NCBI GenBank assembly: GCA_047495785.1
Contig: JBLDXI010000002.1
Coordinates: 620,001 to 684,000 of the forward strand
Origin: Lepidodermella squamata
Taxonomy: Eukaryota; Animalia; Gastrotricha
Length of the DNA: 64,000 nucleotides
Direction: 5' to 3'
Shown: positions 4,301-55,358 of the stretch, piece after piece
How the letters are laid out: the number at the start of each line of letters is the position of its first letter
Numbering within the stretch: position 1 is the stretch's first letter
Made by a program: the position numbers and the translations under genes
The notes under the pieces: model-generated
Told to the model about the DNA's origin: nothing
Seen by the model: only the letters and a program-made list of their open reading frames with translations
Databases searched by the model: none

Positions 4301-7003
4301 ATGACGGCGCCGGTTTTCCTGAAAATTATCATCTTAACACTCCCAGGTAGGGTCATCATCATCATACAAGTTTCCTAAATTTTCCCTAAATTTTCTGAAT
4401 TATTAAATTTTTTAGAAATTAATTTTTTTTAGAAAATTTTAGAATTAATTTTTAGAAATTAATCTCATTTTATACCCTGAGACCTCCAAATTCGCTGAAT
4501 TTTAAAAAAATTTAGTAAAATTCATAGGCCTCGGGCTTCTTTTATCTAGGTAATTAAAGGTATTATAGCTTAATACAGTATTTTTCTACGATTGAACGGA
4601 AATATCCAGAAAAAAATATTTTCCTGTATTTTCGGTATTTGCCTTTCAATTTTTTTAATCCCAACCCTCAGCTTTCAAAGACTTGATAATCTTTATGCAC
4701 CGCCAAATTTGATATTCCTATAGCGTCATGCTTCGCCGTTTGTCAATCGCTCTATCAACAATGTGGCGGATCAACGTGGACTGGGTCGACATGCTGCCAA
4801 TCTGGCGTTACCTGCGTCTACCAAAACGACTTCTACTGGCAATGCCTGTACGCGAATGAAACGCAAAGTAGTTCAACTTCAAGTTCGCCATCTACGGCAA
4901 CTTCAGTAACTACAACGCAATCTACATCGTCCCTCAAATGGTCGAGTTCCAGCCCAGCAACTACAACTACAACGCAACAAACGAGCACGACATCCACAAA
5001 AACATCAACTTCATCGACCAAAACTACAACTGCTGCTGCAACATTGCTAACGACAACTTTGATAAGTTCAAGTGCTCACACGTCGCCTTCGACCAAATCA
5101 TCAAGTTCCTCGGTTTCTCCTACATCAAGTCCAAAAACGTCGACGTTAGGTTCCATCTCGAATGGGACAAGCGCAGCAACTTCGCTATCTTCGATCATAC
5201 CATCAAGCTCTGCAATTTCTTCTTCTTCGAGTCCAAAAACGTCGACATTGGGTTTCATCTCGAATGGAACAAGTACTGCTTTATCTCCATTATCCTCGTC
5301 GATCTATCTAGGCTCTATAACAAATGCTTCTAGTCCTTCGACTGCATCATCAAGCTTCTCGGTTTCCTCTACATTAACTCTGACATCGACTACTTTGGGT
5401 TTTATATCTAATGGGACGAGTACTGTAACACCAGGTATCACGACTTCGACTGAGGATTCAACTTCTCCCATTACTACAACGACAGCCTCAATGACGGATT
5501 CGAGTTCGATAGCCTCTAGTTCTGATCCAAGCAGTTCCGATTCTTCGACCTTATCAACAATCTCTCTTAATGTCTCTGAATCTCTCTCTACAGACGCAGA
5601 GACTACAACAGAGAAGAGTCCGAGCACCGATGTGGCTCCTACTACAACGTCGACCTCAATAATCGATTCGAACTCGATAGCCTCAACTTCAGATTCCACG
5701 ATGAACGATTTCTCAACCCTCTCAGAAGCAAGTGATTCCAACTCCAAGGAGGAAGAGAACACGCCCCAAACAAGTTCGAGTCCGAGCACTGAAGCGCCAG
5801 ACTTACCATCAATAAACGCTTACTATGACATAGAATCGGGATCCTTACTTTGCGACCCGATTACAGGCTTCCCGATGCCACCCCTAGTCCAAGGACATGC
5901 CGTGCCACTCGTCAGCCTTAACAACCTACTTCAATGCGAAAATATCTGGCCCGAGAATCTAGCCCCGGACCCTGTTTCGCCAACAACAATATACGCGAGC
6001 ATAACAAACAGAAAGTTGGTCGAAATCGACAGTATGAAAGAAACAATCACCCTTTTCACGGACGTTCTCCTCCAATGGCGGGTGAGGTCATGCTCAACTA
6101 CTAGCGTTTCAGGCGGCGTGAATGAGATCGAGCGCGTTGTAGTGGTCGATGATAGGAAAGTCTGGAAGCCTGAAGTGATTTTCACAAATTCAAGCACGAA
6201 AGACATCAAACTGTCGGAGCGGAAAAACTTCGGTAGTGATATGCACATTCTTTACGTTCCGACGAAACCGAATCGAACGCTCTTCTTCTATTGGGCTCGG
6301 TCAGGGATAGTCACGTCAAAATGCCGACTGGACGCCCAAAAATTCCCGTTCGACATTCAAGTCTGCGATTTCTATTTATTTTTGAAGGTAAATCTCAGCA
6401 AACTTTTGAAAGAAGGAAGTTGACCCCGTTTTTTTTCAGGAGCCTTCAACCTTGACAAATTTCGGAGGAATTTTTCTGAATGGTGTCAGCTTGACGAATG
6501 ACATGTGGACCTTGGCTGGCCAATCGAATCGCAGTGGCTTAGTTTCGAAAGGTCCCCGTCAATTCAGCTATGTTTGCTTCAGCCTAACTTTGAAACGGAA
6601 CCCGAATTACTACTTAGGTAGTTTGCTGGTCCCTTGCCTCATACTGGTTGTTACAGTGTTCGGTTCATTCGCCCTACCAGCCCGATCAGCAGAGCGACCC
6701 TCTCTCTGCGGCACAGTGCTGTTAGCGCTTTTGGTCATGAAAAACTACGTCATGAAAGAAGTACCGCACAAAACTGCGAACGTAGTGTTTTTCGAATATC
6801 TATTCCTAATTGCCAATTTGACGGTTTTAATCACTCTGCACCACATGGTAATGTGCGCGGTCGGGCGATCGAAGGTTCGAAAACTCACATTTTTGTCCAC
6901 CAGAGTAATTAAATTAACGAGGGCTCTCGATACTTTCATGATGATAATTTTTGCTACATTTTTCACCTGCATTAGCGCTAATGCATTCTCCAAATTGGTA
7001 TAA
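4301..7003 (+). CDS. pLGIC-1: signal peptide - 1x CBM1 - Ser/Thr stalk - Cys-loop ligand-binding domain - 4 TM; exons 4301-4346, 4724-6387, 6440-7003
   Basis: MTAPVFLKIIILTLP|ASCFAVCQSLYQQCGGSTWTGSTCCQSGVTCVYQNDFYWQCL is in frame with ORF 5044..6423. Loop A VWKPEVIFTN, Cys-loop CRLDAQKFPFDIQVC, pre-M1 LKRNPNYY, M2 ERPSLCGTVLLAL. Confidence 0.88.
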
Positions 7004-7047
7004 ACATTTATTCACTAATTTGACAATTAATGAAAGCTGTTGACTGA

Positions 7048-10000
7048 ATGATGATTCGCTTTCTATTACCTTTGCTCTATGTTGGACTTCTTGGTAAATT
7101 TCAAGTAAAGATTCAAGATGATAAGAAGTACATTTTTGTTAGATGGCGCCATAAATCCCGAACCTTTGACCAATGTGATTCAGCTGCCACCCCTGTTTCA
7201 ATCTGCAACATATCTCCAGTCGTTTTCATTCGATTTCGAAAACAGCAGTGCTCCAACATCAACTGCTTTAACGGTTTATTTAGCAGCGAAAAGCACGGCT
7301 TTAGGTTACGAGCTGGTATCAGTAGCGAATTCAGCCAATCGACAGGGAGTAGCTAGATTCCCAGCGGTAATTATCTCCAAATCATATTAATCCTTGGTAA
7401 AATTGGGTTTCTTAGAAACTGGATCCTGCTGTAGCTTCGAGCTTCAGAATCGATTTATCTGTCGATGCGAATTACTCAATATCAGGACAATGTGCTTGGT
7501 TTGGATTCCTATTGCACGATTTATACACAAGTTCAATGATTTGTGAGTTATTCATAGTGAATTATTAGTGCTCCACTTCTTCCTTCGTCCTCAAGATCCG
7601 AATGATACGATGTCGTCATTCAAAGGGGCGTATATCTGGCACCAAATCTGTCCGAATGGCTACGTATCTGCTGGCATACAAAATACGGTAAGAACTACTG
7701 CTTTCGGCCCGGCGGACCTCGCGAGCGTGCCATCCTGCACTCAATGCCGGAATATCTTAACTACTACGGGAATTGCGAGCTACCAAATGTCTATTCAAGT
7801 TTTGAATGACGCCGTGACCACCGCAATGTATACTGGAACCGGGACTCCGATCGCGTTCCCTACAACCTGCTTCAACGGGGCTATGATCTCTGGAATCAAT
7901 ACCTTGATCTCAAGTGGGACGTTCATGAGTTTGGTTGGGCTGGGAGGCAGCCTTGCTACGATAAGAGTGAGGAGTCTGCACTTTTTCCAGCTTCAAGCGA
8001 CCTCGCTTTCTGGTACATTCCGTTTTATTCTTGGAAATTTGACCCGATTTTTGTTATGTTAAGCTGCAAGTCGCGGTCCGAATGAGTTCATGTTGCCCTA
8101 TCCACCTCAAATGACATCGTACACCTATTTGGCTAACCAATCGTTCGACTCGCTCGATTCGGCTCCACTGACTAACTGGACCACCTACAACAACTTTAGA
8201 GTCAGTGGAGGGGTCGTGCAAGTTGGCGATAATACGACTTCTCTTGAATCATTCATCAAATCACCGGTTTGTTTTTCATTTTGCTCGCATTATGAAGTTA
8301 CGTTTCAGCTTTCAGGTTATTCCAGCAGTGAGTCCTACGACAGCTTTTCGAATCGAAATTTCCCTTCGAACACTGCAAATGCTGTACCCTGGATCCGGCG
8401 ATGGAACAAGAATTTTATTCAATCTTGGATATTACAGCGCCCCACTGTATTTCTGGAGCGTTTACAGCACCGATACTTTGAACGGGTTCCAGGGGCTACT
8501 TTTCGGGTTTTCATTCCGGCAAACAACGATAGACGTTATTTTCGTGTACAGCGCGGCTGCAGTTTCCAGCTACCCCTTCACAGCTAATCGAGTTGCGGCC
8601 TGCTCCGGATGTTCTCTTGTTCCTTCTGATTTTGTCAGTGGTGTTAGGGTTGTTTTTCAGATCTACAATGATCAGACAACTGTAAGTGGGCGAATTTCAA
8701 TGCAGATTAATTTACAATGAATTTTCAGATCGCGGTTTACGTCTCAGGAGATGATTTCCCAATGATGTGCTACAACCGAGTTAGCACACCGGGACTTCAG
8801 TCGGCGATCTTAGCTCTAGGAGGAGGCGTAGTGCAACTAAACGATTTCAACACAAATGTAAACTTGGTCTATCCAATTGTTTCAGAGTTCAACGTATTTT
8901 ATATCACCCCATCTCCATGGATAAGTACGTTTTAGGAGGTTCAAGCTTCAAGCTTGATGTTAACCTATTATTGCTTGCAGCCACGACTGCTGCGGTATGT
9001 GCCAACATCCTTTATAACCAATGCGCAGGAATAGGATGGTCGGGTGCAACTTGCTGCCCGGCGGGTTCAGTGTGCACGTACGCTTCTACATACTACTCTC
9101 AATGCTTAGTTGGCACAGCGCCAACTGCAGCTGTAGACACAACGACAACGACCATTTCTTCCTCTACAACTTCAACTTCGGCGTCTACTTCGACGACCTC
9201 AAAAAGCACTTCGACTTCGACTACAACTCAGAGCACGCCAACTACAACAGTAGTTTCAACAACGACGTCCACACCATTGACTAGCTCATCAACTTCTACC
9301 ACGGCTGTTACAACTAGTAGTAGCTCGACTACGGTATCTACAAGCTCTTCAACGTCCAGTCCCCAAACATCGGTTACGAATTACCAGAGCACGGCGTCGA
9401 CTTCAACCTCGACAGCCTCTACAAGTGGGACCATTACGGCGTCATCAGGATCTTCTTCGTCCAGTTCGAGTACATCGATTTCCACCAGCGCTGTTACGCC
9501 TGCTTATTCGACAGTTTCATCGACGGCATTTCCTTCATTTTCATCTCCATCTTCGAGTGGACCAGGTACTGTAACTACGTCTTCAGGTTCTTCTTTGTCC
9601 AGTACAAGTAAATCGATTTCAACGAGCTCTGCTGTATCTTCGACAGCTTTGTCGTCTCCTTCAGCTTCATCTTCATCAATTTCAACTTTATTACCAACAA
9701 CGACAGGCTCAACTTCTAACATGTTAAATACAGGCAGCTCTCCGGGATCTACGAAGACTATAACCTCTGCAACTAACAGCGTTTCATCTGGAACTACATC
9801 TACTATCGCCACAAGTGGGATGAATTCAATAGGTTCAACTGCGACTTCTGTTGGCTCGACGCCAACTTCGAACTCCACGTACTACAGCAGTTCCTCGAAA
9901 ATGGCCACTACAGCTGTTTCCACAACTCAGATGACAAAGCAGCCGAATCTTACAAATGACTTCAGCATCTATACAAACATCGAAAGCAATCCTCAACTTA

Positions 10001-11167
10001 TCGACCCTCAAACTGGATTCCCTATCCCGCCTCTAGTCGAAGGTCACGCCAGACCTTTGGTCTCAGTTGAAGACATTCTGAATTGTCCGAATGTCCAGCC
10101 GGAAGTCCACGCGCCTGATGACGGCAATTCAACGAAAGTCTACTTCACAATGACAGTAAATCGACTGCTAAACATTGATAGTTTGAATGAGACAATGTCG
10201 ATTTTCGCTAATGTCTACCTGCAATGGTCGGTGAAAACGTGCCCAGCCGCGCAAACTGCAAGTTCAGTTGCAGAGCTCGAGCGAGTTATTGTTGTTAATG
10301 ATGAATCGATGTGGAAGCCACGAATCGCATTTGCCAACTCGAGCAACAGAGATATCTATATGCAATCGAAGAAAAATTTCGGCAGTGACATGCAGGTTCT
10401 CTTCGTCCCAACAACGCCAAATCGGACAATGTTCTTCTATTGGACGAGAACGGGCATTTTAACAACTAAATGTGAAGTTGATGTGGAGCTGTTCCCTTTC
10501 GATAGCCTAACTTGCGATTTCTTCTTTAGCTCTAAGGTAAAGGAATACGAAAAGTATAATGTCTATAAATTATTAGAATTCTCAGGAACCTACAAAAATG
10601 ATCGAGTTCGGGGGAATCTACGCTGATATTCTGAAAATGTCACCTAATAGTCTTTGGAAATTCGTCAAAATTACAAATGGGACCGGACGCAGCTCCATTT
10701 CTACTGACACGAAACAATCCTATTCCCATTCTTATGTCAGGATCTCGTTAAAGCGGAACGCCTCTTACTACATCAATTCGCTTCTAGCTCCTTGTTTGAT
10801 TCTGATATCGACAGTTTTCGGGTCGTTTGCAATTCCTTACCATCAAAACGAGCGGCCTTCAATAGTTGCTACAACACTTCTGGCTCTTGTCGTAGCTCAG
10901 ATAAATGTGATGAAGGAAGTCCCGAAAACTTCGCAGAAAATTCTGTTCGCTGAATACATCTTTTTCACGAGTTTACTAACAGCGCTTATTACAATTTACG
11001 ACATGACGATGTGCTTGCTTGGCAAGGCTTTGCATGGAAAGAGTATTGACTTTTCTACTATTGGACGAGTTGGCTTAGCAGATTTGCTCGATTATGTTGC
11101 GATCGCGAGTTCGGTAGCATTCTTCGCAGCTATTAATGCAAATGCATTCGCACGATTTCAACTCTGA
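7048..11167 (+). CDS. pLGIC-2: signal peptide - 2 lectin-like domains - 1x CBM1 - stalk - Cys-loop LBD - 4 TM (multi-exon)
   Basis: Exon 1 (7048-7093) MMIRFLLPLLYVGLL splices to DGAINPEPLTNVIQLP. CBM1 at 8998-9108 is CANILYNQCAGIGWSGATCCPAGSVCTYASTYYSQCL. Cys-loop CEVDVELFPFDSLTC; M2 ERPSIVATTLLALVV. Confidence 0.85.
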
Positions 11168-11463
11168 CATTTCGGACTTAGGACAAGCCATTGAGAATAA
11201 AACGATTTGACGCTGTTTTTCTCCATTTATTGTCTCCCCTTACGAAAAATCGAAATGAAATCTATCTATTGAGTAGCTTAGCTTGCCGTGTTCTGAAAAA
11301 TGAGTGTAATAAAATAACTCCCAGAATAATAAATTGCTTGAAAACAATAAAAAATCACTTAGGCTGGGCACCCTGTGTACGTTAAGCAATTTCAGCCTCC
11401 GAGTCTACACGAGTGGGCTCGGCAATCACTCAGTTTTTCAACTGTCTGCGATTTTTTAGAAAT

Positions 11464-14400
11464 ATGTTCAAGCGTTTATCCATTGTCGTGCTAGCTGTTG
11501 TAACTTCTGTGATCGGTAACAGACTATTTTTTAATTGCATTTTCATTTTTTGATGTTCTGTTTAAAGTACGAGCTGCACCGATGACGAAATATTTACAGC
11601 TACCGAAAGGATACCAAACAGCTACGCTGGATTCAGATTTGTCTTTCGACTATCTCAATAGCCCAGTTGTCCCCGGGCCTTCGCTAACTCTAGAAAAGGC
11701 AGCTCAAAATTCAACCTTGGGAACTGGCTACGATCTATTGACAAGCAACTCAACTTTTCGGCAGGGCGGGATCTTTTTCTCAAAGGTTCGAAAGATTGTC
11801 ATGAAATGCTATAAATGATGACGATTTGATATTACAGAAATTTGCATCGCACTGCAATCTAGGCTTCAGAGTGGAAATCGCCGTCGAAGCTAGTTATGTG
11901 ACCACTGGACAGTGTGCTTTGCTAGCGTACCTCGTTTACGATATAGGCGTGAAACCGGAATCAGGTTAACTTTTGAAATCTAAACTAGATTCATCATCGT
12001 TTGTTCTTCTTCACCCAAAGGCACGAATGACACTATTTCCAGCTTCACGGATGTGGCATTTTTCCACCAAATTTGCCCAAATGGATCGTTTTGGACGATT
12101 CCGAAAGGTCGAACGACCAGTCAAGCCTTCACCCCATCAAATGTTCCTGGTATAATATCTTGTTCAGCCTGCAGCGAATTTCTACCCTCAACTGGTAGTT
12201 CTAAGTATAAAATCATCATTCAGAGTGTTGGGGACTTAGTTACTGTTTGTTTGTTACGAAAAATTGGATCCTATTTATATATTTTGCATATCGTTCTTAA
12301 AGGTTGTTATGGTATCAGATTCTGGCTCTTCAACCTTTTGCTACAGCTCAGCTAATTCGGTTGGATTATCTGCATTGGCAGGAGCTTCAAAGGCCACAAT
12401 GGCATTCATTGGACTAGGAGGAAGTTACGCCAGCATTCGTCTGCGATCAGTCAACTTTTACACCTTTGCTTCAAACTCCATATCACGTACTTCATGGTCA
12501 CCCCATTTGCGTGATAATGTTTACTGGTCCATTTTTAGGTGCATATCGGCAGCCGAATGAATACATGTTGCCGTACCCTATCGATCAGAGTACATTTACG
12601 TACTTATCGAACTACTCCTTCGACCCCAACAAGACATCGCCCCTCGCTAATTGGGTTACCCTGCACGACTACGCAGTAACAAGCACTGCTGTTGTTGTGG
12701 GTGGCAATAATTCTGGCGTTGAATCCTTTATCAAATCACAGGTTAGGAAAACAGTCCGGTTGAAAAATAGGCCGATTTTTGATTGAACAACAGACTCTGC
12801 CCATCGTCCCACCTAGCTACGGATTCCGCGTTGAAATTGCTATGTCATCGTCACCTTTGCAAATGGCTAGCTCATCACGTGGGTCTATGATTTACGTGCA
12901 CCTCGGCTTTATCGATCAGCCGGGGTACTTCAGTGACATCGCAACATCTGATCAGCTGCTGAATTTTCGTGGCCTCGCTCTTGGATTCGCATTTTACGCG
13001 ACAACGGTCGATGTCAGCCTGATTTATTCGCAGAAATTGAATAACAGTTTGGTCTATTCGACAAATCGAAAGCTGCCATGTTATACGTGCACCCTGACAC
13101 CGACTCAATTCCTAATTGGGGTAGAGCTGGTCATTCAAGTGGCTCGTGACCTAGCCACCGTAAGAATATCAAATCAAACTACTTAATTAGTTTTGTTTAA
13201 TTGATTTTCAGATTTCAATCAAAGCATATGACGATCTCTTTCCCAAGATATGCTACAGCAATTACCCCGTTCCTGGTCTGTCAACCGTAATTTTGACCCG
13301 GGGAGGAGGTGTAATTGAAATTTCGAGTCAAAACGCTAACAACGTGAACCAAGTCTACGCATTCATTGCACAGCTGAATGTTTTTCACTTGACACTATCA
13401 TCTGGGCTAAGTACGTTTCAGCTATATATTTTCTAATATTTTGAATGACTTTTTTCATAGCAACCCAAACTCCAGTCTGCTCCATCGCTATGTACACCCA
13501 GTGCGATGGGATGGATTGGACTGGGGAAACGTGTTGCCCGCCTGGAGGGGTGTGCACTTTCAGCAGTGCTTATTACTGGCAATGTTTGCCTGGGTCCCAA
13601 GCTACAACAACACCGCTGGTTTCGTCCGGCTGCACTATTCCTGTGGCATTGTGGCAGCAATGCGGGGGCATAGGATGGACAGGATCGACCTGCTGTACAT
13701 CGGATGGTGTATGCACCTATCAGAGTGACTACTACTGGCAATGCATTCCCTTGCCGCAGACTACAACCGCAGCCCCAACATTTCAAACCACAACAGGTCC
13801 TTGTACTGGCAATGTTTCCTCGTGGCAGCAATGCGGCGGGATAGGGTGGACTGGGGCGACCTGCTGTACCCCTGATGCCTTATGCACCTATCAAAACGAT
13901 TACTACTGGCAATGCATTCCATTGCCGCAGACTACAACCCAAGCTGCGACAATTCCAACTACGACAGGCCCTTGCACTGGCATTGTCTCGTTGTGGCAGC
14001 AATGTGGTGGAATAGGTTGGAATGGGGCCACTTGCTGTACCCCTGATGGCTTGTGTACCTATCAAAGCGATTACTATTGGCAATGTATTCCGATCCCACA
14101 AACTACTGCAATAGCTACAACATTTTCAACAACGACAGGGGCTTGCACTGGTAACGTATCTGCGTGGCAGCAATGCGGTGGAATTGGTTGGGCTGGGGAC
14201 ACCTGCTGTAGCCCTGATGCCTTATGCACCTACCAAAACGACTACTACTGGCAATGCATTCCCTTGCCGCAGACTACAACCGCAGCCCCAACATTTCAAA
14301 CTACGACAGGGCCCTGTACTGGTAATGTTTCCTCATGGCAGCAATGTGGCGGGATAGGATGGGCTGGGGACACCTGCTGTAGCCCTGATGCCTTATGCAC

Positions 14401-16568
14401 CTACCAAAACGACTACTACTGGCAATGCATTCCCTTGCCGCAGACTACAACCGCAGCCCCAACATTTCAAACTACGACAGGGCCCTGTACTGGTAATGTT
14501 TCCTCATGGCAGCAATGTGGCGGGATAGGATGGGCTGGGGACACCTGCTGTAGCCCTGATGCCTTATGCACCTACCAAAACGACTACTACTGGCAATGCA
14601 TTCCCTTGCCGCAGACCACTACCGCAGCCCCAACATTTCAAACTACGACAGGGCCCTGTACTGGCAATGTTTCTTCGTGGCAGCAATGTGGCGGGATAGG
14701 ATGGGCCGGAGACACTTGTTGTAGTTCCGATGCATTGTGCACCTATCAAAATGATTACTACTGGCAATGTATTCCGATTCCTCAAACGACTACTGCAGAA
14801 CAATCAACAGCCTCAGATACGGGTATCCCTGATTCAACATCCTCATCTAGCCTTGCTACTTCAAGCTCTACTGCTGTTTTCACAAGTTCTTCATCAACGG
14901 AATTGCCCACTACACCCACTTCAACGTCTACTGAGATTTCATCGAGCTCTGGGACCAGTACAACATCAACCGAAACTTCGACCTCCATTCCTAGCTCTAG
15001 TTCCACAGCAACGTATGGCTCCATTACCACTACGTCGTCTGTGAGTTCTACTACAGGAGCTTTATCATCTTCATCGACTGGTTCCAGTTCTACCACCATC
15101 TTACCGTCCACTTCCCTTTCAATCCTACCTACATCTTCCTCCTCGATAAATCCTACCGCCACATCCTCTGTAAGATCTTCTACTGGGAGCTCACTGGCAT
15201 CAATCAGCATTCAGCCGAGTTCGACTGCAATACCTACGACTGCTATTCAAAGTTCCATAGCAACATCGCTTGTTGCAATAAGTAGTTCTCCAGCTACTTT
15301 CCCAGCTTCTACAATGCCCTCAGGGAACCCAACTACCTCAATCGGAGGGTCAACGACAGTGGCAGACCGTTTCGAGGCTTACTACGACATCAAAAGTTAT
15401 TCCTTTCTAAGCGATCCTAAAACCGGCTTCCCGATGCCTTCGCTCGTGTCTGGCCGGGCAGTGCCCCTCATAAGTCTTGAAGAACTCCTCAAGTGCCCAA
15501 ATATTTGGCCTGAAAATCTGGCGCCGGACGCTGATCGGCCAACTTTTCTCTACTTCACCCTTTCAGTCGATAAATTAGTAAATATCGACAGTCTGAATGA
15601 ATCGCTAACAATCCTGGGCAGCATTTACCTTCAATGGCGGGTCAGATCGTGCCCAGCCGAGCTGATTGCGGGCGGGGCGAATGAGCTTGAACGCATTGTA
15701 GTGCTAGACAACAAGAAGGTCTGGAAACCTGACCTTGTCTACGCGAATTCCACCGCGAGGGACATCAAAATGGCTTCGAAGCGAACGACTGGCTCGGATA
15801 TGCACATCCTTTACGTGCCGACCAAGCCGAATAGGACGTTATTTTTCTACTGGACGCAAGCAGGAATGCTGACTTCGAAATGCAAACTTGATGTCACGCT
15901 TTTCCCATTCGATGTTCAATTTTGCGATTTCTTTTTCTACTCTAAGGTTTGAAAGGAAAGCTCGCCGAAATCTGACTGAATATTTTGTTTAGGAGCCCTG
16001 GACGTTGACAACTTTCGGCGGGATTTTTCTAGATGAAATTCAGCTTTCAAACGATATGTGGAAGATAATTGGTCAATCAAACGGTACTGGATTAGGCCAG
16101 ATGACTGAAAAAGGTCTTGTACCTTTTAGCTACGCCTACGTTCGGCTTGAATTAGCCAGAAATCCTGCTTATTACATCAACTCTTTGCTGATACCCAGTG
16201 TCATTCTTATCTCCATTATTTTCGCCTCATTTTTGATCCCTTGCCGATCTGCTGAACGGCCGTCGTTATGTGCGACTGTTTTGTTGGCCTTCGTTTTGGC
16301 GCAGAGCAACGTTATCAAGGAGATACCTAGGACCAGTGAGAAAGTTGTATTCGTCGAGTTCATCTTTTTGACAACGAATCTGACGGCATTAATCACGCTG
16401 CATCACATGATGTTGTGTATGATTGGACGATCTAAATCTCGGAAAGTAGCTATTCAAAGCCTTTCAGGGATGAAACTTACTCGAGCCCTGGACATCTTTG
16501 TATTTTCGTTATCTGTTATTTTTTACGCTGGTATCTCAGCGAATGCCTTTACGCAGCTTCGTGAGTGA
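11464..16568 (+). CDS. pLGIC-3: signal peptide - 2 lectin-like domains - 8x CBM1 - stalk - Cys-loop LBD - 4 TM (multi-exon)
   Basis: Exon 1 (11464-11515) MFKRLSIVVLAVVTSVI splices at 11568 to VRAAPMTKYLQLP. Eight CBM1 modules in ORF 13445..15952. Cys-loop CKLDVTLFPFDVQFC; TM exon is ORF 16005..16568. Confidence 0.87.
13478..14773 (+). repeat. Tandem array of 8 CBM1 modules, mostly on a 171-bp (57-aa) period
   Basis: Unit CTGNVSSWQQCGGIGWAGDTCCSPDALCTYQNDYYWQCIPLPQTTTAAPTFQTTTGP. The same nucleotide word occurs at 14311 and 14482 (171 bp apart). Units 5-7 are nearly identical at DNA level. Confidence 0.93.
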
Positions 16569-16669
16569 TATTGTAATGAAATCGAAACATTTCTTTCAAT
16601 GAAGCTAATAAAAAATAGGTGAAAGCATGCCTTTGGCAATATTTCGGGCTCCCTAGCTCGCGATCAGTG

Positions 16670-16707
16670 GCAAGCCATAATAGCAAGCCATAATAGCAAG
16701 CCATAAT
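16670..16707. repeat. 13-bp minisatellite GCAAGCCATAATA x~3
   Basis: Read directly, downstream of pLGIC-3. Confidence 0.8.
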
Positions 16708-17414
16708 CTGGCAATTATGAACATAGGAGGGAAATAACCGATTCGGAGCTTATGGTATCTATACAGCCTCCGAGTACATTGTTTATATTGTCTAAGTTTA
16801 GTATCTGTATGGGAGCTTTCAAAGCGAATTCATGCTGCCACAAGCAACAAAATAATGCTTTTTTATCTGACCCATAAGACATATTCGGAGTTCGGAGACA
16901 CATCTTTCTATAGGTCAACCTCAAGGCATGATTTCAAGGCTAGTCGATTTTTGAAAAGGCATTTATAGCGTCTTGAGTCTTGATATGTTTATGTTGAAAG
17001 TTCTCAACCTTATTTATTTTCGAATGTCTTTTTTGACCTCCCATGTCATTGTACGGTTCTTTAATGCGTTCGACAAGTTCCAGGTTCCACGCGAAATGAA
17101 GTGTCTTTCTTTTTCTGTGAGTTATCACTCGTCTTGTGGTGTAAATAAGCTGAGTGCGCGCCACCTGGAGCCTCCTCCACCTCTAAACAATTCATGATTC
17201 TACGCTACTGTTTCGCTAATGAACTGCTGGCGTCCGGTAGTGAACTCAGCAATTAGTCATGTTTATTCAGAAGTAATCACCGACACAAATGTTGATGTTA
17301 TTGCTCGCGTTCGAAAACCCACGGCTTATCGACATTTGACAAAAAATTAAGACAAACTTCACAAAGCTATAGCAATGTAATTTTCTCAGTCGCTGAATTG
17401 AGCATTGGTAGAAA

Positions 17415-20400
17415 ATGATTTCCCTGTTCATGTTTTCTATACTTCACTTGAACCTCATTCCAAGTCATAGTATGCTAACTTTCGAATCTGCGCCACTTCG
17501 TATTTAATCTTCAATTATTTCAGGTGTACCACTCACTCAGTATTTACAACTGCCGATTAATTACCAAGTGGCAACTCTTGATCCCGATTTTTCTTTCGAT
17601 TACGTATCAAACTCATCATCAATCGGTCCCAGTCTGCAAACTGATAAAGCTGCTCAAAATGCGACAACGGGGAAAGGTTATTCGCTCATTACTGGACCGA
17701 GTTCAACTTACAATCAGGGTGGTTTGTTCTTCTCTAACGTAAGTACATCAAGATGACATCTTCCGAATTTCATTTTTTTTATTCATGAAAGGCTTTACAA
17801 CCAGGTTGCGCCCACTCATTCCGAGTTGAAATTAGCGTAGAAACTAATTTTTCGACATCCGGAGCGTGCGGTTGGCTTGGAATTTTATTTTTCGATCTGA
17901 CCAAAGTGCCGAACCTGGGTTGGCCCTACTGATTTTACCATAATGACCTTAATTTTTGAAATATTGCAGAGCCAAACGATACGATTTCAGGTTTCTCAGA
18001 CACAGCATTTTTTCATCAAATTTGCCCCTCTGGTGGTTTGAAAGCGATACGAAGTGGTACAACTTCGGGGCAACCTTTCAATCCAGCTGAACTATCTGGG
18101 CAACCTTCTTGTTCGAGCTGTAGTGAAGTACTAACAAACTCTGGAGCTTCGAAATATCCCATCATCATCCAGGCGATTGAAGACTCTTTCACTGTAAGAC
18201 AATTTCGAGCCGGGACATTTGATAATTATTATCCGCTTTAAGGTGGTTTTGGTGACACCAGATGGTCCAACTTACTTTTGCTACAGCTCCGTCGAACTCC
18301 CAGGATTTTCAGCCCTTACTGCGATGGCCAAAACCAAAATGGCGATAGTTGGACTTGGAGGAAGTTCCGCTGATATCCGGATTACATCAGTCAGTTTCTA
18401 CGTTCTCAGTTCCAGTCATGCGAATCGTAAGAGCCTGTTCTAGTTCCTCATTCTAACCAATCGATTTTTCCGTAGGTGATGTGCGTAAGCCGAACGAGTA
18501 TATGTTCCCCCTGCCCACGGATCAGACAACCTATACCTACTTACCGAATCAATCGTTCGATAATTTGAAATCTTCCCCGCTTGCAAATTGGACAACGTAC
18601 AACGACTACGCAATTTTAGGGAATGCCGTAGTGGTTGGAAGCAACTCAACCACTTTTGAATCACTAATCCGATCTGGGGTACGATTTTACAGGAATTTTT
18701 TCGGAATTATATTTGATTTTATGCAGCGTATGCCAATCGTTTCACCGAATGCTGGATTTCGGGTGGAAATCGCAATGTCTTCTTCAAATTTGCAAAACCC
18801 AAGCACAACCCGCGGCTCGTTAATTTTCGTTCATCTTGGATTCATCAACGAGCCGGCTTCTTTCAGCGATATTGTTTCATCCGACAAGCTTTCAAACTAT
18901 CGAGGCTTGGCCTTAGGATTCGCATTCTACAACACACGGGTTGAAGTCAGTTTGGTGTATTCGCAAACTTTGAGTACTAGCTTAGCGTACTCAACTAGCG
19001 TCATTTCGCCCTGTTCGAGCTGTAGTTTGACTCCGGGAGATATTGCTGACGGCATTGAGATTGGGATTCAAGTCTATAAAGACATGGCTACTGTTGCTAT
19101 CATGGTTGATGACGCAGAATTTCCGATGATTTGCTACCAAAACTTACTGTTGCCTGGCCTTTCATCGATCATCCTATCACGCGGAGGTGGGACAGTCGCG
19201 ATTTCAAGCCAAAATAGCAATGGGGTGAATATTGCTTACGCAATCATTGCAGAACTCAATGTTTTTCATCTGACGTTATCGGCTGGTTTAAGTAAGTTGA
19301 TTACGGAGATCTGGAAGGATTTTCATTGCTCTTTCACCCAGCTACCCCTTCGACTGTTTGCTCGAATGCAGTGTACACGCAATGCGACGGGTTCGATTGG
19401 GCGGGCGAGACTTGCTGCCCAGCTGGAACGGTTTGCAACTGGAACAGCGACTATTTCTGGCAATGCGAGCCCACAGCAACAACTATTTCAGTAAATTCAA
19501 ATTCGCCGTCAGGCCCATGTGCCACATTGTACAACAAATGCGGCGGGTTAAATTGGAATGGAACTACGTGTTGTGAACCAGGGTCGGTTTGCGTCTATCA
19601 AAACGATTTCTACTGGCAATGCGTCGCTAGTGGTATCCCAGCTGTTGTTGCATCATCCTCATCACAATCATCAACGTCACTGCCGTCAGTATCATCAGGA
19701 CCCTGTGCTGCCTTGTACCAGCAATGTGGCGGTATCAATTGGAATGGGACCAATTGCTGCGAAACTGGGGCTGTCTGTGCTTATCAAAATGATTACTACT
19801 GGCAATGCGTCGCTAATGGTACCTCAGCTGTAGCTGTAATAACCTCAGTCTCATCATCATCAGCAACCACAGCATCGTCATCAGGGTCGTGTGCTGCCCT
19901 ATATCAACAGTGTGGAGGAACCAATTGGGCTGGGAGCACGTGCTGTGCATCCGGTTCAGTTTGCGTCTATCAAAATGATTACTACTGGCAATGCGTGGCT
20001 AATGGCTCACCAGTGGTACCTCCAACAACCAGCTTAGAATCGTCGACTATATCTTCCCTGTCTCAAACATCAACCGCGATTAGCTTGTCATTGACTACGG
20101 CTTCACCATCCCAAACGTCCTTTACTCCACTTTCGACTACGTCTTTATCAGTCCCAACATCAACCACGATTTACGCTTCGTCGACTACGTCCACGCCGAT
20201 TCGAACATCAACTGCGAGTGGCCCATCTTCGACTACACCTTCGGTAACATCAACTGCGAGTGGCCCATCTTCGACTACACCTTCGGTAACATCAACTGCG
20301 AGTGGCCCATCTTCGACTACACCTTCAGTAACATCAACTGCGAGTGGCCCATCTTCGACTACACCTTCAGTAACTCGAACTCAATCTTCAACTACAACAA

Positions 20401-22164
20401 CGCCAACTCAGCCATCAACTACGACTATTCCAGCTTCGACTTCGCCTCCTCGAACCCCAACATCATCTCCTATTATACCATCTTCAACTACGTCCATGCC
20501 GAACCAAACGTCAATTGCAACTACTTCATCGTCTACGACTTCTTCGCCAACTCAAACTGCGATTACTTCAGTCAATTATTCCAGCTCAGGAACGACACCT
20601 GGCCCCGAATCGACTTCTAATGCATCTCCTGCCCGATTTGGGGTGACGCTGGACCCTTACTACCCCTACTACGACATAGGTCCTGGCTCCTACCTTAGCG
20701 ACCCAAGAACAGGCTTCCCAATGCCACCTTTGATCACTGGAAAAGCCGTACCACTTGTCAGCCTTGAAGATCTACTGAAATGTGGGAATATCTGGCCAGA
20801 AAATTTTGCGCCAGATGCTGATCATTCAACTGATGTCTACTTCACCGCTAACATCGATAAATTGATCAATATCGATAGTTTGAACGAAACTATGACACTT
20901 TTCGGTAGCATCTTCCTGCAATGGAGTGTTAAGTCATGCCCTGCCGAGCTGATTTCTGGAGGAGCCAACGAGATGGAGCGAGTCATGGTGATAGACGACT
21001 CTGCCGTGTGGAAGCCTGAGATTGTCTTCGCGAACTCGAGCTCGAAGTATTACGAAGACACAACTACTCGGAAGAAATTTGGCAGCGATATGCATATCCT
21101 TTACGTTCCGACGAAACCGAATCGAACTTTGTTCTTCTATTGGGCTCTAACTGGTGTTATGACATCAAAATGCCGGCTTAACGTCGCAAATTTCCCGTTC
21201 GATACTCAAATTTGCGACATTTACCTGAATTCAAAAGTTAGTTGTTTTTGTATTTAATATTAATGAATTCATATGTCTGTTGCTTGAGTGCGTTATTTTT
21301 TCGCATTCTGATTTTTCTAAACATCAATTTGCTCATAAACATCGGAGGTGTAGAGTCTAGATGAGTGCAAGGCTCTCAATTATTTTATTTTCCCTAGTTT
21401 TAAAAGCGTTTTTAGCTTCATCTATTATGTACATTTTAAATCCCATAAAATCAATCAAAATTTGCGTCTCAAAAGTTGAATTTTGTACGTTTTCTTGGGT
21501 TTCATCCTAATTCTTGAAATAATTTCAATTATTATTAAATTCTTAAATTAAATCATTGATTTAATTAATGTTAATTACGAAGGAACCTTGGACATTCATC
21601 ACATTTGGAGGAATCTATCTAAACGACATCCAGTCATCAAATGAAATTTGGACCATCACGAAAAAAGAAAATGGAACAGGCTTTGGACCTGGCGCCCGTG
21701 ACTCCAGTATGACCTACAGCTACGCCTATATCCGCCTTACTATGAAGCGAAAGTCATCCTATTACATCAACTCGCTATTGATTCCTGCGGTAATATTGAT
21801 TTTCCCAGTGTTCGGCTCTTTCGGGATCAGGCCTCGTTCCGGGAATCGGCCAGCCCTCTGTGCTACTGTGGTCCTGGCGTTTGTTGTAATGCAGAGGCGC
21901 GTTTTGAAAGAGGTCCCACGCACTAGCGAGAAGATCATGTTTGTCGAGTTCATCTTTCTTACCGAAGTTTTAACATCAGTGATCACGCTGTACCATATGG
22001 CTCTGTGCGTGCTTGGTTGCTCTGTGATCCGAAAGTTCAGGCTGGTCAGATTCGGACACTTCAAAGCGACTAAAACGATAGACCTCATTATGTTAGTAAT
22101 CTCAGTCGCAATTTTCGCTAGCATTGCTGTTAGCACTTTTTCGCAGTTAATCATTCCAGGCTAA
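17415..22164 (+). CDS. pLGIC-4: signal peptide - 2 lectin-like domains - 4x CBM1 - stalk - Cys-loop LBD - 4 TM (multi-exon)
   Basis: Exon 1 (17415-17469) MISLFMFSILHLNLIPSH splices at 17524 to SVPLTQYLQLP. Four CBM1 modules at ~19359-19997. Cys-loop CRLNVANFPFDTQIC; intron 21237-21582; M2 NRPALCATVVLAFVV. Confidence 0.85.
20205..20372 (+). repeat. 42-bp coding tandem repeat x4 (TSTASGPSSTTPSV) in the pLGIC-4 stalk
   Basis: ACATCAACTGCGAGTGGCCCATCTTCGACTACACCTTC(G/A)GTA repeated four times. Confidence 0.92.
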
Positions 22165-28331: not shown

Positions 28332-31300
28332 ATGAACATTCGAGTAGCAATTCGAACGAGGCCGTTACTTGCGAGGTAATTAATAGAATAATTAATTGAT
28401 TATCTTTTATTGATGATTTTTAATTATTATCAGTGATTATCAGCGGATAACGAATCATGCTAATGGATTGGCCCAAGCAGTGCATGTTGTCGATGAGAAT
28501 AATTCGTTACTGATATTGGATCCCCAAACCGCTAAGCCGACCCATCAGTACTATTTCGGTTCGTCTTAATCCGATAATGATAAAATTAAAAGGCAAAAGG
28601 CGCAATTGAAGCTATAAAAATCAATTTTCAAACGAGTATCCCTAGTAGGGTGACTAGATCTAAATGCGCAAAAAGATCGTTATACTAACCAGATTTCCCC
28701 CAATCAAATTTTTCGAAAAATCTTCCTTGGAATTTTCGAATTTAGTGAATAATTCAACTTTAAATTCAAAACTGTACAGCCTAACTAAATTCGGTGAATT
28801 TCAAGGTTCCAGCGTTAAACTTAAGGCTTAACTACTGAAGTTCTCCTTAATAGGACTTTTCGAGATTCACTCCTTTAATTTTTCCCCTCCGATTCCCAAC
28901 CTCACTATTGCGAGTATTATGCATTGCGAGTTGTCAGTTTTTGAGTTTTACTACGGCCTACTAAGCCGATATCAATTCCTATTATCGATTTTACAAATCA
29001 GTGATTTTTCCGATATCAGAACTTTGAAAGACCAAATTCGACAGATTCCCATCTAGCTGATGGTACCAGGTAGCCATAATGTCATCGGGGATCCTTATGA
29101 ATCTGGAAAAGAAAGCTGAAAATCTCCACGACCATTTTGTCCAATTTGACCTTAGGTCATTTTCCATTTTTCCTCTATTTTTCTCAAATCTAACTGATTT
29201 ACCGAATTATTTTTATTATTTCACAGACAAAGTGTTTCAGCCTGAGGAGTCGACTGAGGAAGTCTACAACATCGTGGTAATTTATAATAAGGAAATGAGG
29301 TCAAATTTTCCTAATTTTCTCGATTTCAGGCTAAACACATTGTGTACCACGCTGTGAAGGGCTACAACGGAACAATTTTCGCGTATGGCCAAACCTCAAC
29401 CGGCAAAACGCATACCGTATTCGGCCATTCCGAAGTGTCGCCCGGCATCGTGCCCATGGCAATCAACGACATTTTCGACCAGATCGAACAGGCCGGAAAA
29501 TCGCGGCTCTTCTTCGTCCGACTCGCCTGCCTTGAAATCTACAACGAAAAACTGACCGATCTAGCGGCTTTCGATGTTGGTAAACAGAATATTGGCCCTA
29601 AGCTGAAGACGCTGCGAATTCGCGAAACCCAGGGCGGGTTCATTTTCGTTGAAAATCTCATCGAAGAGGTGTGCACAACGCGAGAGAGTGCGCATTACTT
29701 TTTGAATGAATGTCTCACCCGGCGGCATATGGCTCAGACTTTGGCTAATCAAGACTCATCTCGGTCTCATGTGATATGCCGGGTGATAGTTGAAAGCCGC
29801 CCTGTAGCCGGGTCGAGCCGGCAGTCTGTCAATGGCGAAGAGGCGATGGTTGACTACGACCAGGCTCCGACAACGATTGGCGAGTTGAATTTTGTGGATT
29901 TAGCCGGGTCCGAGGCTGCGGTTAAGGTCGTTGCCCCTAGCAACGGGGTGGCGAATAATTTAGCGATTGGGGCTAATATTTTACCGCCGGAGACTGTTGC
30001 GAGGATGAAGGAAGGCCGGGCGATAAATCGCAGTTTGTTGATGCTGGGCATTGTCATCAATCAGCTGGCTGAGAATCGGTCGATTGTTCAGTATCGAAAT
30101 TCGAAGCTGACCAGGATTCTGCAGAATGGATTGGGCGGGAATTCGCTGACGGCCATTGTTTGTACAATTTCACCGACTGAAGCTGATAAGCGGCAGACAA
30201 TTAGCACACTACAGGTCAGTTTTAATTTCAACGCGGGACAATGAAAATTTGAAAAAAATCAAAGATTTTTATATTCAAGCGAAAAATAAATGGAAATTAA
30301 ATAGTAAATATTAGGCGTGAAAATTTGAGCTGTAAAAAGTTCCTCTTGATATTAGGAATTTTTTAGATTTTTTTGGCCGAATGCCAAAGTAAGAAATTTT
30401 CCTTCCCTAATTTATTATGTCCATATATCTTAAATTTTTAATTTTAACGCGCCTAGAATTTCAGGCTTATCTTTATTTGCTTTTATTATAAAGTCTCATC
30501 AAAGGTTTTATATAGGATCAAGAACATTTCACATTTTCTCTAAAAAAAATTTCAGGCGAAAAATCTTGGAATTTCCAGAGAATTCAACATCTTGGAAAAA
30601 ATGGAAATTCTCGTACTGTGTGACTATTTCTGGTTTTAGATTGGACTCGATTTACATATTTGAGGCTCAAGACTAAATCCCCTCTAAATATGATTTTTCC
30701 GGGTTTAAATCTTCCTTAAATTTTTAATGTTTAATTTTTATATTTTTTCATTCGTTTTGAAATTTTCTAAATTGAAAAATTGTTGAGCCGATACATATTA
30801 AACTTATTACAAATTCCTGAGAAAAACAGGTGACTAGAAGGAAAGGTTTCAGAGTTAAGGATCACAACTATGAAAAAGGAAAAATTAAAAATGAGAAAAT
30901 GTAGTGTAATAGGAAATTCTTTTAAAACTTCAATTTTGAAAATTTTTCCTGAATTTCTATTGAATTTTAAATTCTATCATTTACTTTGAACTATTCTTCA
31001 AAACCAACTCTTCATGCTGAGTAAAAATTTGTATAGCTCTATTAAAATTCTCATTTTTTCTCAGTTTGCAAGCAATGCGAAATCAATAAGGACAAAGCCG
31101 CGCCTTAACGAAACGTATTCGCCCGACCAAGCAATTCTACGCCGCCTTCAGCTCGAAATCGAACGACTGCGCCGGCGAATAGTTGAACTCGAAATGCAGC
31201 AATCATTCCCTAGCAGCCAGATAAATTCATCAACTGCCGAGCGGCAACAACTGCACGAAAACGAACAGCTCCTGCTCGAGATGATCGCAGGCGGGCGGCG

Positions 31301-45055: not shown

Positions 45056-45737
45056 TGAAATCGGCGTTTACTGATGAGTAAATTGTGTCTGGTACATTAA
45101 GTTCCAATCTTTTTTGTTCAGTCCAAATTGCATTTTCAACTTCTTACATAATTTATTGGACATATTATCACGAGATTTGAAAATCCAAGCATTTTGTTGC
45201 GAGGCAGCTTGATACTATTGGGATTGTCCGTTTCTAAACCCATGAATTAACAGTCGCCAAAAAGCCAGTTGGGTTAAAAAAGGTTCTATAATCTGGTCTA
45301 TAAATATATCAATTTAATTTATACGAACCCACACAAGCGGATTGCGACTCAGAATTAACCGATGCTACTATGGCGCATTATGAATAAGTGATGAAATGAT
45401 TCTGCGTCCATTTGTCCATGACTAGGAGTTCATTTCGGACAAGATTTTGATTAACGAATTTTCAACCTCGATTTATGGGAGGATCTGCACAGTGTGACGC
45501 GAAAGTACTGATAAGCCCTCAAGCGACCCATGGAGCTCTCACTCGGTAACTATGGCCTCGTCTCACCCAGTCAAAGAATGGGACGGGATCTCTTAAAAAT
45601 ACAAAAAATTGTCGAATTTTCGAATTTCAGCAGTCAGCAGGCAGCTAGATTTCTTCAGATGTCGAGAATTCCAAACCATAACAACGCAGAAAGGCCAGTT
45701 TATTTTCGTATAAAAACTACAAAACAAGACAAAATAC

Positions 45738-48700: not shown

Positions 48701-49441
48701 CAATCTGGACAATTAAGATAACACTAGCGGGCAGAGGCGTAGGTAATTTGCATTGGCCACAGTTGCTTATTGAAGGTGCAGTTGGTGGGTCCACTTTATC
48801 GTTCGATTGTGACTGGTAGCCGTAAACTCTACCGCCGGGACAAACTTCGAGAAAAAGGACGAGCCCCATGAGACCGTCGATTGCGTTGTCATTACCTGAA
48901 ACACTCATACGTTCAAAAGCTCTTTCCAAAGTCACTTAAAACTTAGAAGTGACACTCATTTGCCTAACGACCAGTGAGAGTGGTGCTTCTAAGCGGGATT
49001 TAAAGTGTGCCAACTGCTTCTTACCGGATATAAGGGCTATAGCACTATCTTTTGCCTGGAACATCAACCCGAACACAGCACAATCCGAGCCGATATAAGA
49101 CAAGCTCATCGCCAGATTGAGGGCAAGCTCTATTCGCCATTGAGCGGGAGGTTGTAACCACTGAATAAAAAAACAATAAATCATGAACTTTATTGCTAGA
49201 AGGCAAACTGTCACCGTTGCTCCTGAAACAAATTTGACTAGCATTTTTCCAAGTTCAATTTTCTGTTGCATCTGGTAGCGGGCGTTTCCAGCTTCCTCCA
49301 TAATTTATCCGAACATTTTGGCGAAAATTCCCAATAGATTGTTGAGCGTTGATTGCCCGGAAACATGCGAGGCAACATAACGTTTCCCGCCACTTCTGGG
49401 AATTTAGAGTCAAAAATTCCGTAGCGGGTAGAGGACCGTCA
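45738..49441 (-). CDS. pLGIC-6: 2 lectin-like domains - stalk - Cys-loop LBD - 4 TM; 5' end unresolved, possibly disrupted
   Basis: Cys-loop CTLNLRTFPFDEQVC; TM exon nearly identical in protein to pLGIC-5. At ~49441 DGPLPATEFLTL matches paralogue starts, but the frame then loses similarity and hits a stop. No clean ATG or signal exon found. Confidence 0.65.
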
Positions 49442-49626
49442 AAAACCTTTGATCATTAAAAACCCATTCAAGCCCATTAAAATCGATATTGAACTCGCGG
49501 ATAGCGACTAAAAATAAGCTTATATTGGCTTTATTTAAAGATTAAGGCAACGTTTTATCAATAATTACAGTTCGATTATCACTTAGAGGCCAATGTCACA
49601 AGTCAGTTTATTAGATTTTCCCATTG

Positions 49627-55173: not shown

Positions 55174-55358
55174 TTTTTTATTTAAACACAAATAAAAATC
55201 CCAACTTCGAGCCAACTTTATTTATAGTCTCCCCAGAAAAAATCGCTAAGCATGAAATGCGCAATGTTAAGTGATTTTAATAATTCATTCCGATTAAATT
55301 GAAAAGGTCGATTTCCTCTGGGAAACTCCATGGTTGCAATTAAATGCTACCAATTTTT

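Follow-up and report, generated by a model that had tools for sequence, protein, structure and literature searches.

Pentameric Cys-loop receptors respond to small soluble transmitters, and as a rule their ectodomain begins directly behind the signal peptide. A stretch of genomic DNA from the gastrotrich Lepidodermella squamata (64,000 nucleotides; positions 620,001 to 684,000 of contig JBLDXI010000002.1 in assembly GCA_047495785.1; hereafter the window, numbered from its first letter) raises the question as to what such a receptor might do when cellulose-binding modules of the type found in fungal cellulases are mounted, on a long stalk, in front of its ligand-binding domain (LBD). In each of four paralogous genes on the + strand of the window (genes 1 to 4; Table 1), one or more carbohydrate-binding modules of family 1 (CBM1), a Ser/Thr-rich stalk and a Cys-loop LBD are joined in a single reading frame. 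The answer proposed here is that these genes encode divergent nicotinic-type channel subunits on which the antenna may serve as a contact sensor for solid polysaccharide, a reading by analogy to which we give a probability of roughly 0.4.

The number of CBM1 modules is one in gene 1, one in gene 2, eight in gene 3 and four in gene 4 (14 in total), as counted with the Pfam family CBM_1 (PF00734, gathering score 20.6 bits) and with a hidden Markov model (HMM) built from the window's own copies; a six-frame HMM scan returns exactly 14 copies, all within these four + strand genes. The open reading frame (ORF) 13445-15952 of gene 3 contains eight Pfam CBM_1 domains (E 1.8e-77, 255.3 bits) and a Neur_chan_LBD domain scoring 41.7 bits; ORF 19326-21257 of gene 4 contains four CBM_1 domains (132.6 bits) and an LBD, and ORF 8917-10626 of gene 2 a single one (36.2 bits) and an LBD. 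In gene 1, the module is detected with the window-derived HMM (E 1.1e-16) and its core shares a frame, uninterrupted by stops, with the LBD ORF 5044-6423. The stalk is located between CBM1 and LBD in all four genes, measures 207-329 residues and is composed of Ser and Thr to 54-62%. An earlier sequence-only reading of the window had reported 1, 1, 8 and 4 modules and had claimed that the fusion does not depend on any splice guess; both statements stand, as the three parts share one frame and the transmembrane domain (TMD) follows after one intron. It had also held the architecture to be undescribed and, as far as this is testable, neither the literature searched nor the database relatives screened contain a CBM1 on a ligand-gated channel. 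What appears to be new here is the presence of CBM1 on a pentameric ligand-gated ion channel (pLGIC); lectin-channel chimeras have already been published for the lobster, and these chimeric Cys-loop receptors (PMC8221624) are an exception to the accompanying view that animal pLGIC subunits normally have nothing but a signal peptide in front of the LBD.

The portion of the antenna most distant from the membrane is not the same in all four genes. Genes 2 to 4 encode, in this order, a signal peptide, two lectin-fold domains, CBM1, stalk, LBD and TMD; in gene 1, which is devoid of lectin-fold domains, the signal peptide is joined straight to CBM1, followed by stalk, LBD and TMD. The initial picture of CBM1 as the tip of the antenna is thus correct for gene 1 and has to be given up for genes 2 to 4, where the signal peptide and two lectin-fold domains (~520 residues) precede it. 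Likewise, of the gene starts first proposed, that of gene 1 at 4301 is retained, and those at 8917, 13445 and 19326 turn out to be ORF starts only, onto which upstream exons are spliced. These upstream exons of genes 2 to 4 form a conserved series of short exons encoding the signal peptide and two homologous domains of ~250 residues. The intron that joins the lectin block to the CBM1 exon is in phase 1, is 50-56 nt long with a GTAAGT or GTACGT donor, and occupies the same codon position in genes 2 to 4; in gene 1, the phase-1 donor of the signal-peptide exon matches the phase-1 acceptor of the CBM1 exon. As predicted from these junctions, the lectin block is a phase 1-1 cassette that is absent from gene 1. 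The ATG at 8917, considered as a possible start of gene 2, was excluded by a net +1 indel located before CBM1 in another haplotype; the region around it is explained by the conserved phase-1 intron present there.

On the other side of the LBD, the exon encoding the four transmembrane segments follows after one intron, as had been proposed; this GT-AG intron is in phase 0, has the same position in all four genes and measures 46-52 nt in genes 1 to 3 and 346 nt in gene 4. The LBD exon ends with '...K', the transmembrane exon starts with 'EP..FGG', and the junction is fixed because an intron-free paralogue on the minus strand (m3 in Table 1) reads straight through that point. The two introns of gene 1 (377 and 52 nt) are of the GT-AG type and leave its ORF intact. 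In gene 4, a 48-nt intron within the second lectin-fold domain (18679-18726, + strand) is in frame and stop-free and thus does not close the ORF; it came to light only because the introns at that place in genes 2 and 3 (49 and 52 nt) are out of frame, and because AlphaFold2 (AF2) predicted this part with low confidence. Each of the four assembled models (757, 1238, 1544 and 1349 residues) stays intact across its 2-9 introns, and their hydropathy profiles display an N-terminal signal and the M1, M3 and M4 segments, with no further membrane segment.

Table 1. Predicted features of the two channel gene clusters, in window coordinates (D1 and D2, first and second lectin-fold domains; TM, transmembrane; aa, amino acids).
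Feature	Position	Strand	Details
Channel gene cluster	4.3-22.2 kb	+	four paralogous genes
Gene 1	4301-7003	+	757 aa; exons 4301-4346, 4724-6387, 6440-7003
Gene 1 signal peptide	4301-4346	+	phase-1 donor
Gene 1 CBM1 core	4753-4845	+	
Gene 1 stalk	4846-5832	+	
Gene 1 LBD	5833-6387	+	
Gene 1 four-TM exon	6440-7003	+	
Gene 2	7048-11167	+	1238 aa; 9 exons
Gene 2 signal peptide	7048-7093	+	
Gene 2 D1	7143-8012	+	
Gene 2 D2	8064-8924	+	
Gene 2 CBM1/stalk/LBD exon	8981-10536	+	
Gene 2 CBM1 core	9013-9105	+	
Gene 2 stalk	9106-9981	+	
Gene 2 LBD	9982-10536	+	
Gene 2 TM exon	10586-11167	+	
Gene 3	11464-16568	+	1544 aa; 10 exons
Gene 3 signal peptide	11464-11515	+	
Gene 3 D1	11568-12486	+	
Gene 3 D2	12539-13410	+	
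Gene 3 CBM1 modules	within 13461-14770	+	eight copies
Gene 3 stalk	14771-15391	+	
Gene 3 LBD	15392-15946	+	
Gene 3 TM exon	15993-16568	+	
Gene 4	17415-22164	+	1349 aa; 9 exons
Gene 4 signal peptide	17415-17469	+	
Gene 4 D1	17524-18426	+	
Gene 4 D2	18476-19291	+	
Gene 4 CBM1 modules	within 19342-19994	+	four copies
Gene 4 stalk	19995-20678	+	42-nt x4 repeat at 20204-20374
Gene 4 LBD	20679-21236	+	
Gene 4 TM exon	21583-22164	+	
Second channel cluster	39254-58800	-	at least four paralogues: two lectin-fold domains, Ser/Thr stalk, LBD, TMD; no CBM1
m1 LBD/TM ORF	39254-40898	-	
m2 LBD/TM ORF	45738-47631	-	
m3 LBD/TM ORF	49627-51186	-	LBD and TMD in one exon, no intron
m4 LBD/TM ORF	55359-56799	-	

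The CBM1 copies display the six-Cys pattern of the Cel6A type, and the Cys columns, the W.G motif and the terminal QC are invariant in 14 out of 14. Residues of the binding face, namely Trp/Tyr, a Tyr-Tyr pair, Asn and Gln, align together with the six Cys to the modules of EG-I (4BMF) and CBH-I (1CBH), the W/Y-x-Q-C and N-D-Y-Y-x-Q-C motifs included. Judged by this alignment, the aromatic binding face of the modules is intact and would be suited to bind glycans; chitin is also a possible ligand of CBM1. Successive copies are connected by Pro/Thr linkers resembling those of cellulases. In gene 3, copies 2-8 are organised as a 171-nt tandem unit (13631-14827), and recent duplicates are confined to copies 5-7 of this gene.

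The coding sequences also bear the marks of selection. Over the 14 CBM1 cores, the ratio of non-synonymous to synonymous differences (pN/pS) amounts to 0.16 within gene 3 and 0.35 between genes, with synonymous sites near saturation (pS ~0.7). A search of public runs for the locus matched one DNA-type run (X1), whose contigs cover 5400-11300 (genes 1 and 2) at 95-100% identity. Over 5.9 kb, 64 substitutions and five indels separate X1 from the window (~1% divergence), and X1 probably represents the other haplotype or another strain rather than an identical assembly source. All five indels fall in predicted non-coding DNA: one in intron 1 of gene 2 (7131), three in the lectin-to-CBM1 intron (8929, 8934 and 8966) and one in intergenic DNA (11225). 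Substitutions were classified for 40 of the 64, the listed ones spanning the channel exons of gene 1 and the lectin-fold exons of gene 2; 34 of these 40 lie in predicted exons, 25 being synonymous and 9 non-synonymous. This synonymous excess, the intronic and intergenic location of the indels and the low pN/pS of the CBM1 cores together establish that the coding sequence is under purifying selection, in the CBM1 modules as well as in the lectin-fold and channel exons.

The two domains lying upstream of CBM1 in genes 2 to 4 have no match in Pfam, and a profile search of the PDB with the lectin-fold domain gave nothing significant (best E 0.29). AF2 modelled the second of them with a pLDDT of 38 from the single sequence and of 72 when provided with a 24-row alignment of paralogues. 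The top Foldseek matches of this model are legume lectins, Emp46p, ERGIC-53, VIP36 and PL7 lyases, with a probability of 1.0 and TM-scores of 0.45-0.57 by target, which are moderate values; on this model, both upstream domains are ConA-like β-sandwiches, at the level of the fold only. The Asp of a 'DG.AF' motif is retained in only some of the lectin-fold copies. CLECT, pentraxin and LDLa domains were not found by Pfam in the + strand genes.

The paralogues and more distant relatives of genes 1 to 4 indicate when CBM1 was added to the antenna. In the second channel cluster, located on the minus strand and containing at least four paralogues, lectin-fold exons sit between the LBD/TM ORFs of m1 to m4, and in ORF 46243-47631 stalk and LBD are in frame with the last part of a lectin-fold domain. 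Two of these genes, m1 and m2, are near-identical recent duplicates (branch lengths 0.04-0.06), and the intron positions of the minus-strand genes are unlike those of the + strand genes. Directly upstream of the lectin-fold pair of m3, an extra pair followed by a Thr/Pro-rich linker occupies 52775-55221 (minus strand); this DNA either gives m3 a total of four lectin-fold domains or constitutes a separate gene, situated between m3 and m4, for a secreted lectin with no channel. Searched exhaustively with HMMER, a set of 1.84 billion representatives gave 2620 matches, the best ~30 of which are proteins from environmental assemblies with identities of at most 44-50%; the contigs of these environmental relatives hold animal-type genes (astacin, BBS7, Kunitz, Sushi). 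The protein P0151 comprises two lectin-fold domains, a Thr linker and a channel in one ORF; P0005 has a lectin fold, then a stalk, then an LBD, without CBM1, and other environmental relatives use LamG_3 or EGF domains as stalked heads. In P0004, from the environmental contigs L002/L003, one ORF encodes a signal peptide, a small head with Cys residues, a Thr-rich stalk and a channel, and its neighbours are genes of the astacin, BBS7 and Kunitz types; at least one other uncultured small animal therefore possesses the stalked-channel family. No CBM1 was found in the best 150 of the 2620 matches or, with the HMM from the window copies, in the minus-strand paralogues and related environmental contigs.

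Other searches yielded no additional relatives. A word-index protein search with the LBD of gene 4 gave no match, a weak blank given that the exhaustive HMMER search did find relatives; a scan of JGI metagenomes with the LBD alignment produced 103 pattern matches, 0 of them confirmed, and a feature search of the ESM Atlas with the CBM1-stalk-LBD exon of gene 1 gave no usable match. Long matches in Owenia (an annelid) and Mactra (a bivalve) were considered as precedents for extended channels and rejected, being tandem-fused predictions of ordinary genes resembling those of nicotinic acetylcholine receptors (nAChRs), with two LBDs. In the phylogenetic tree, genes 1 to 4 form a clade with P0002 and P0005 (support 100/99) and the four minus-strand genes form a separate one (97/93); the branch dividing the minus-strand genes from genes 1 to 4 is supported at 100/99. 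Read from these sequences, the antenna is a trait of the whole channel family, with CBM1, among the sequences screened, only in the sub-clade of genes 1 to 4. The gain of CBM1 is lineage-specific, and it looks like a single local acquisition because the minus-strand paralogues and the environmental relatives possess the lectin-stalk-channel arrangement without it. A plausible course of events would begin with one CBM1 insertion between lectin fold and stalk in the ancestor of genes 1 to 4, continue with tandem gene duplication and then an internal rise in CBM1 number (1 to 4 to 8), and include a later loss of the lectin cassette from gene 1.

Two neighbouring features fall outside the channel clusters. 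An ORF at 29342-30244 (+ strand) encodes a CENP-E-like kinesin motor whose matches, with a best identity of ~44%, are scattered across all eukaryotic groups; the genome comes from a lineage that evolves fast or has been sampled poorly. The window's right end (62300-63426, + strand) contains ankyrin-repeat ORFs (Pfam Ank, E 7e-31).

With regard to the channel part, the LBDs of the four + strand genes score 38.9-50 bits against Neur_chan_LBD (PF02931), the cut-off of which is 26 bits, and each contains a Cys-loop of the form C-x13-C around FPFD, whose cysteines (C164 and C178) are invariant in the family alignment A1. The best PDB matches are nAChR subunits, with E-values of 4.5e-15 for the intron-free paralogue m3, 4.8e-09 for the LBD of gene 3 (to nAChR α3) and 1.1e-06 for the TMD of gene 3, the M1-M3 region of which aligns to nAChR α7 with the M2 motif kept; the octopus chemotactile receptors 8EIS and 9E6B rank 2nd and 15th among the PDB matches of the transmembrane exon. 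The positions of the loop B Trp and of the loop C Cys-Cys of the acetylcholine site are not conserved in the HMMER alignment of m3 with nAChR α6, and the loop C region of genes 1 to 4 is free of CC. On these alignments, the family is nicotinic-like by descent and not an acetylcholine receptor. The M2 segment of genes 1 to 4 has a Leu at 9' and no Pro at -2' and is followed by an E[IV]P.TS motif; the -1' residue is a Glu in genes 1 to 3. By established selectivity rules, the pore is predicted to be, probably, cation-selective. The loop between M3 and M4 is very short (~20 residues). Two features of the family are atypical of canonical Cys-loop receptors, namely a segment before helix 1 of the form FP.P.L..G.A.P.V...L.C and an extra invariant Cys pair (C35/C87 in alignment A1). 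The LBD N-termini that bear them lie, for example, at 15392-15500 and 20679-20790 in the window, and similar ones are found in P0151, P0004 and P0005; the pre-LBD segment and the extra Cys pair may serve to dock or couple the stalk to the LBD.

From these parts, we infer how the predicted channel might bind glycans, assemble as a pentamer, select ions and be gated, and in which cell type it might work. A pentamer would carry 5-40 CBM1 modules on stalks that are presumably O-glycosylated, mucin-like and tens of nanometres long, projecting the heads away from the membrane. The CBM1 and lectin heads would bind to an insoluble β-glycan surface with high avidity, to which extra CBM1 copies would add; cellulose-walled algae or oomycetes, plant debris and chitin are candidate surfaces. 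Such binding would hold or cluster the channel at the point of contact, and the channel would turn the contact into a depolarising cation current in a surface or sensory cell, a kind of 'taste-by-touch' for solid polysaccharide. The opening of the channel could be caused by tension transmitted via the stalk onto the FP.P.L..G.A.P.V...L.C segment at the apex of the LBD or, equally possibly, by a small ligand at a non-cholinergic site. By analogy, octopus chemotactile receptors offer a precedent for contact sensing, and the lobster chimeras support the principle of a lectin-channel fusion in animals.

Several points weigh against such a contact sensor. Allosteric signals are poorly transmitted by a flexible stalk of 200-330 residues, a pull at the N-terminus that opens a pLGIC is hypothetical, and the LBD may bind an ordinary soluble ligand. 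The transmembrane exons of the + strand genes score 17-24 bits against Neur_chan_memb (PF02932), under its cut-off of 28.1 bits, and the -1' residue of gene 4 is Asn, not Glu. The splices and the uninterrupted CBM1/stalk/LBD exon are, in addition, predicted from genomic DNA.

The alternative that survives best, doubtful as it is, assigns to the antenna a role in anchoring only: it would place a conventional soluble-ligand channel in the animal's own coat, such as its chitin structures or glycocalyx, with no gating by polysaccharide. The long flexible stalk indeed makes direct coupling unlikely and CBM1 can also bind chitin; moreover, the paralogues without CBM1 retain the same LBD features, and the LBD therefore probably has its own conserved ligand or trigger. 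However, with the loop B Trp and the loop C Cys-Cys absent, no known transmitter is indicated, and the expansion to eight selected CBM1 copies suggests avidity for an external crystalline surface over retention. A more literal coupling, in which a horizontally acquired, fungal-type CBM1 array would hold on to crystalline cellulose or chitin while movement pulls on the stalks and gates the pLGIC directly, making it a sensor of contact with food, substrate or parasites that have cellulose walls, is unlikely.

That the antenna belongs to a pathogen pattern-recognition channel, detecting the walls of oomycetes or fungi (cellulose, glucan, chitin; cellulose being found in oomycete walls) and eliciting a fast defence response, seems improbable. 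A fast-evolving tandem family with variable heads resembles immune receptor families, and such a role has been proposed for the chimeric receptors of the lobster (PMC8221624); the CBM1 cores are, however, under purifying and not diversifying selection. It is very improbable that no working fusion exists at all, the genes being unexpressed or decaying, or their mRNAs dropping or separating the CBM1-stalk part. The gene models do derive from comparative splice inference, the sole run matching the locus is of the DNA type, and in gene 1 the first donor is weak (GTAGGG) and the intron behind it measures 377 nt. Nevertheless, four ORFs of 757-1544 residues are intact across 2-9 introns, genes 1 and 2 show between haplotypes an excess of synonymous changes with indels outside the exons, and the comparison of paralogues shows the CBM1 cores to be strongly constrained although synonymous divergence is saturated; as CBM1, stalk and LBD lie in one exon, their separation would require unusual internal splicing. 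That the assembly is chimeric here, or that an animal channel gene has been joined to contaminating fungal DNA, an idea brought to mind by the fact that CBM1 is typical of fungi, can practically be dismissed, as the same junction occurs in four diverged paralogues, a contig of the independent run (record 4, 8695-9243) crosses the lectin-to-CBM1 junction, and host-type introns of 46-58 nt lie on either side of the CBM1 exon.

The locus thus reveals an animal lineage that builds large modular antennae on Cys-loop receptors and, in one sub-clade, has equipped them with a fungal-cellulase-type domain under purifying selection. If the CBM1 array acts in gating or targeting, the sensing abilities of pLGICs would extend to insoluble polysaccharide surfaces. 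On the same condition, the locus would provide a natural test case for the coupling of force or avidity via a mucin stalk, as well as a clean case in which a probably foreign-derived module, reported in cellulases of bdelloid rotifers, was shuffled via phase-1 introns into a neuronal-type receptor. Even if the antenna serves anchoring only, it would constitute a new way to position ion channels on the extracellular matrix.

In terms of layout, the antenna is similar to that of the yeast proteins Wsc1 and Mid2, in which a Cys-rich glycan-binding head on an O-glycosylated Ser/Thr 'nanospring' stalk senses force between wall and membrane; these are single-pass signalling proteins and not channels, unrelated in sequence to genes 1 to 4. 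With the modules of fungal Cel6A, Cel7A and EG-I (1CBH, 4BMF) and of the oomycete CBEL, the CBM1 copies share the Pfam family, the six-Cys pattern, the flat aromatic face and the Pro/Thr linkers; in contrast to genes 1 to 4, known CBM1 sits on enzymes or secreted adhesins (e.g. CBEL) and, as far as found, never on an ion channel. Among animal genes, the GH45 of Adineta ricciae, a bdelloid rotifer, is documented to contain CBM1. Apart from the lobster chimeras, the pLGICs described with accessory domains at the N-terminus are prokaryotic; one of them is DeCLIC, whose N-terminal domain modulates gating (PMC9897478, PMC12664993). Genes 1 to 4 likewise have β-rich accessory domains N-terminal to the LBD, whereas DeCLIC-type pLGICs are devoid of Cys-loop, stalk and CBM1, and their N-terminal domain packs directly on the LBD.

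The octopus chemotactile receptors (8EIS, 9E6B) are contact chemosensors of nicotinic origin (10.1101/2025.03.03.641191), pentameric cation channels re-used for 'taste by touch', and genes 1 to 4 share their nicotinic derivation. They have no N-terminal add-on and accommodate poorly soluble small molecules in the orthosteric pocket; by comparison, genes 1 to 4 carry a separate module for solid surfaces, the binding of which is predicted. For the lobster, Polinski et al. (2021, PMC8221624) described Cys-loop receptors that bear a C-type lectin, pentraxin or LDLa domain, called them crustacean-specific and proposed a neuro-immune role for them. In both animals, a Cys-loop LBD and TMD are combined with extra carbohydrate- or pattern-recognition domains in an expanded, lineage-specific family; unlike the lobster chimeras (CLECT, pentraxin, LDLa), for which no CBM1 or long mucin stalk is reported, genes 1 to 4 add CBM1, and genes 2 to 4 also a ConA-like fold. 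A further likeness is that to the lectin-stalk channels of the minus strand and of the environmental contigs, which share the clade, the pre-LBD motif, the extra Cys pair, the two lectin-fold domains and the stalk, and from which genes 1 to 4 are set apart by their CBM1 modules.

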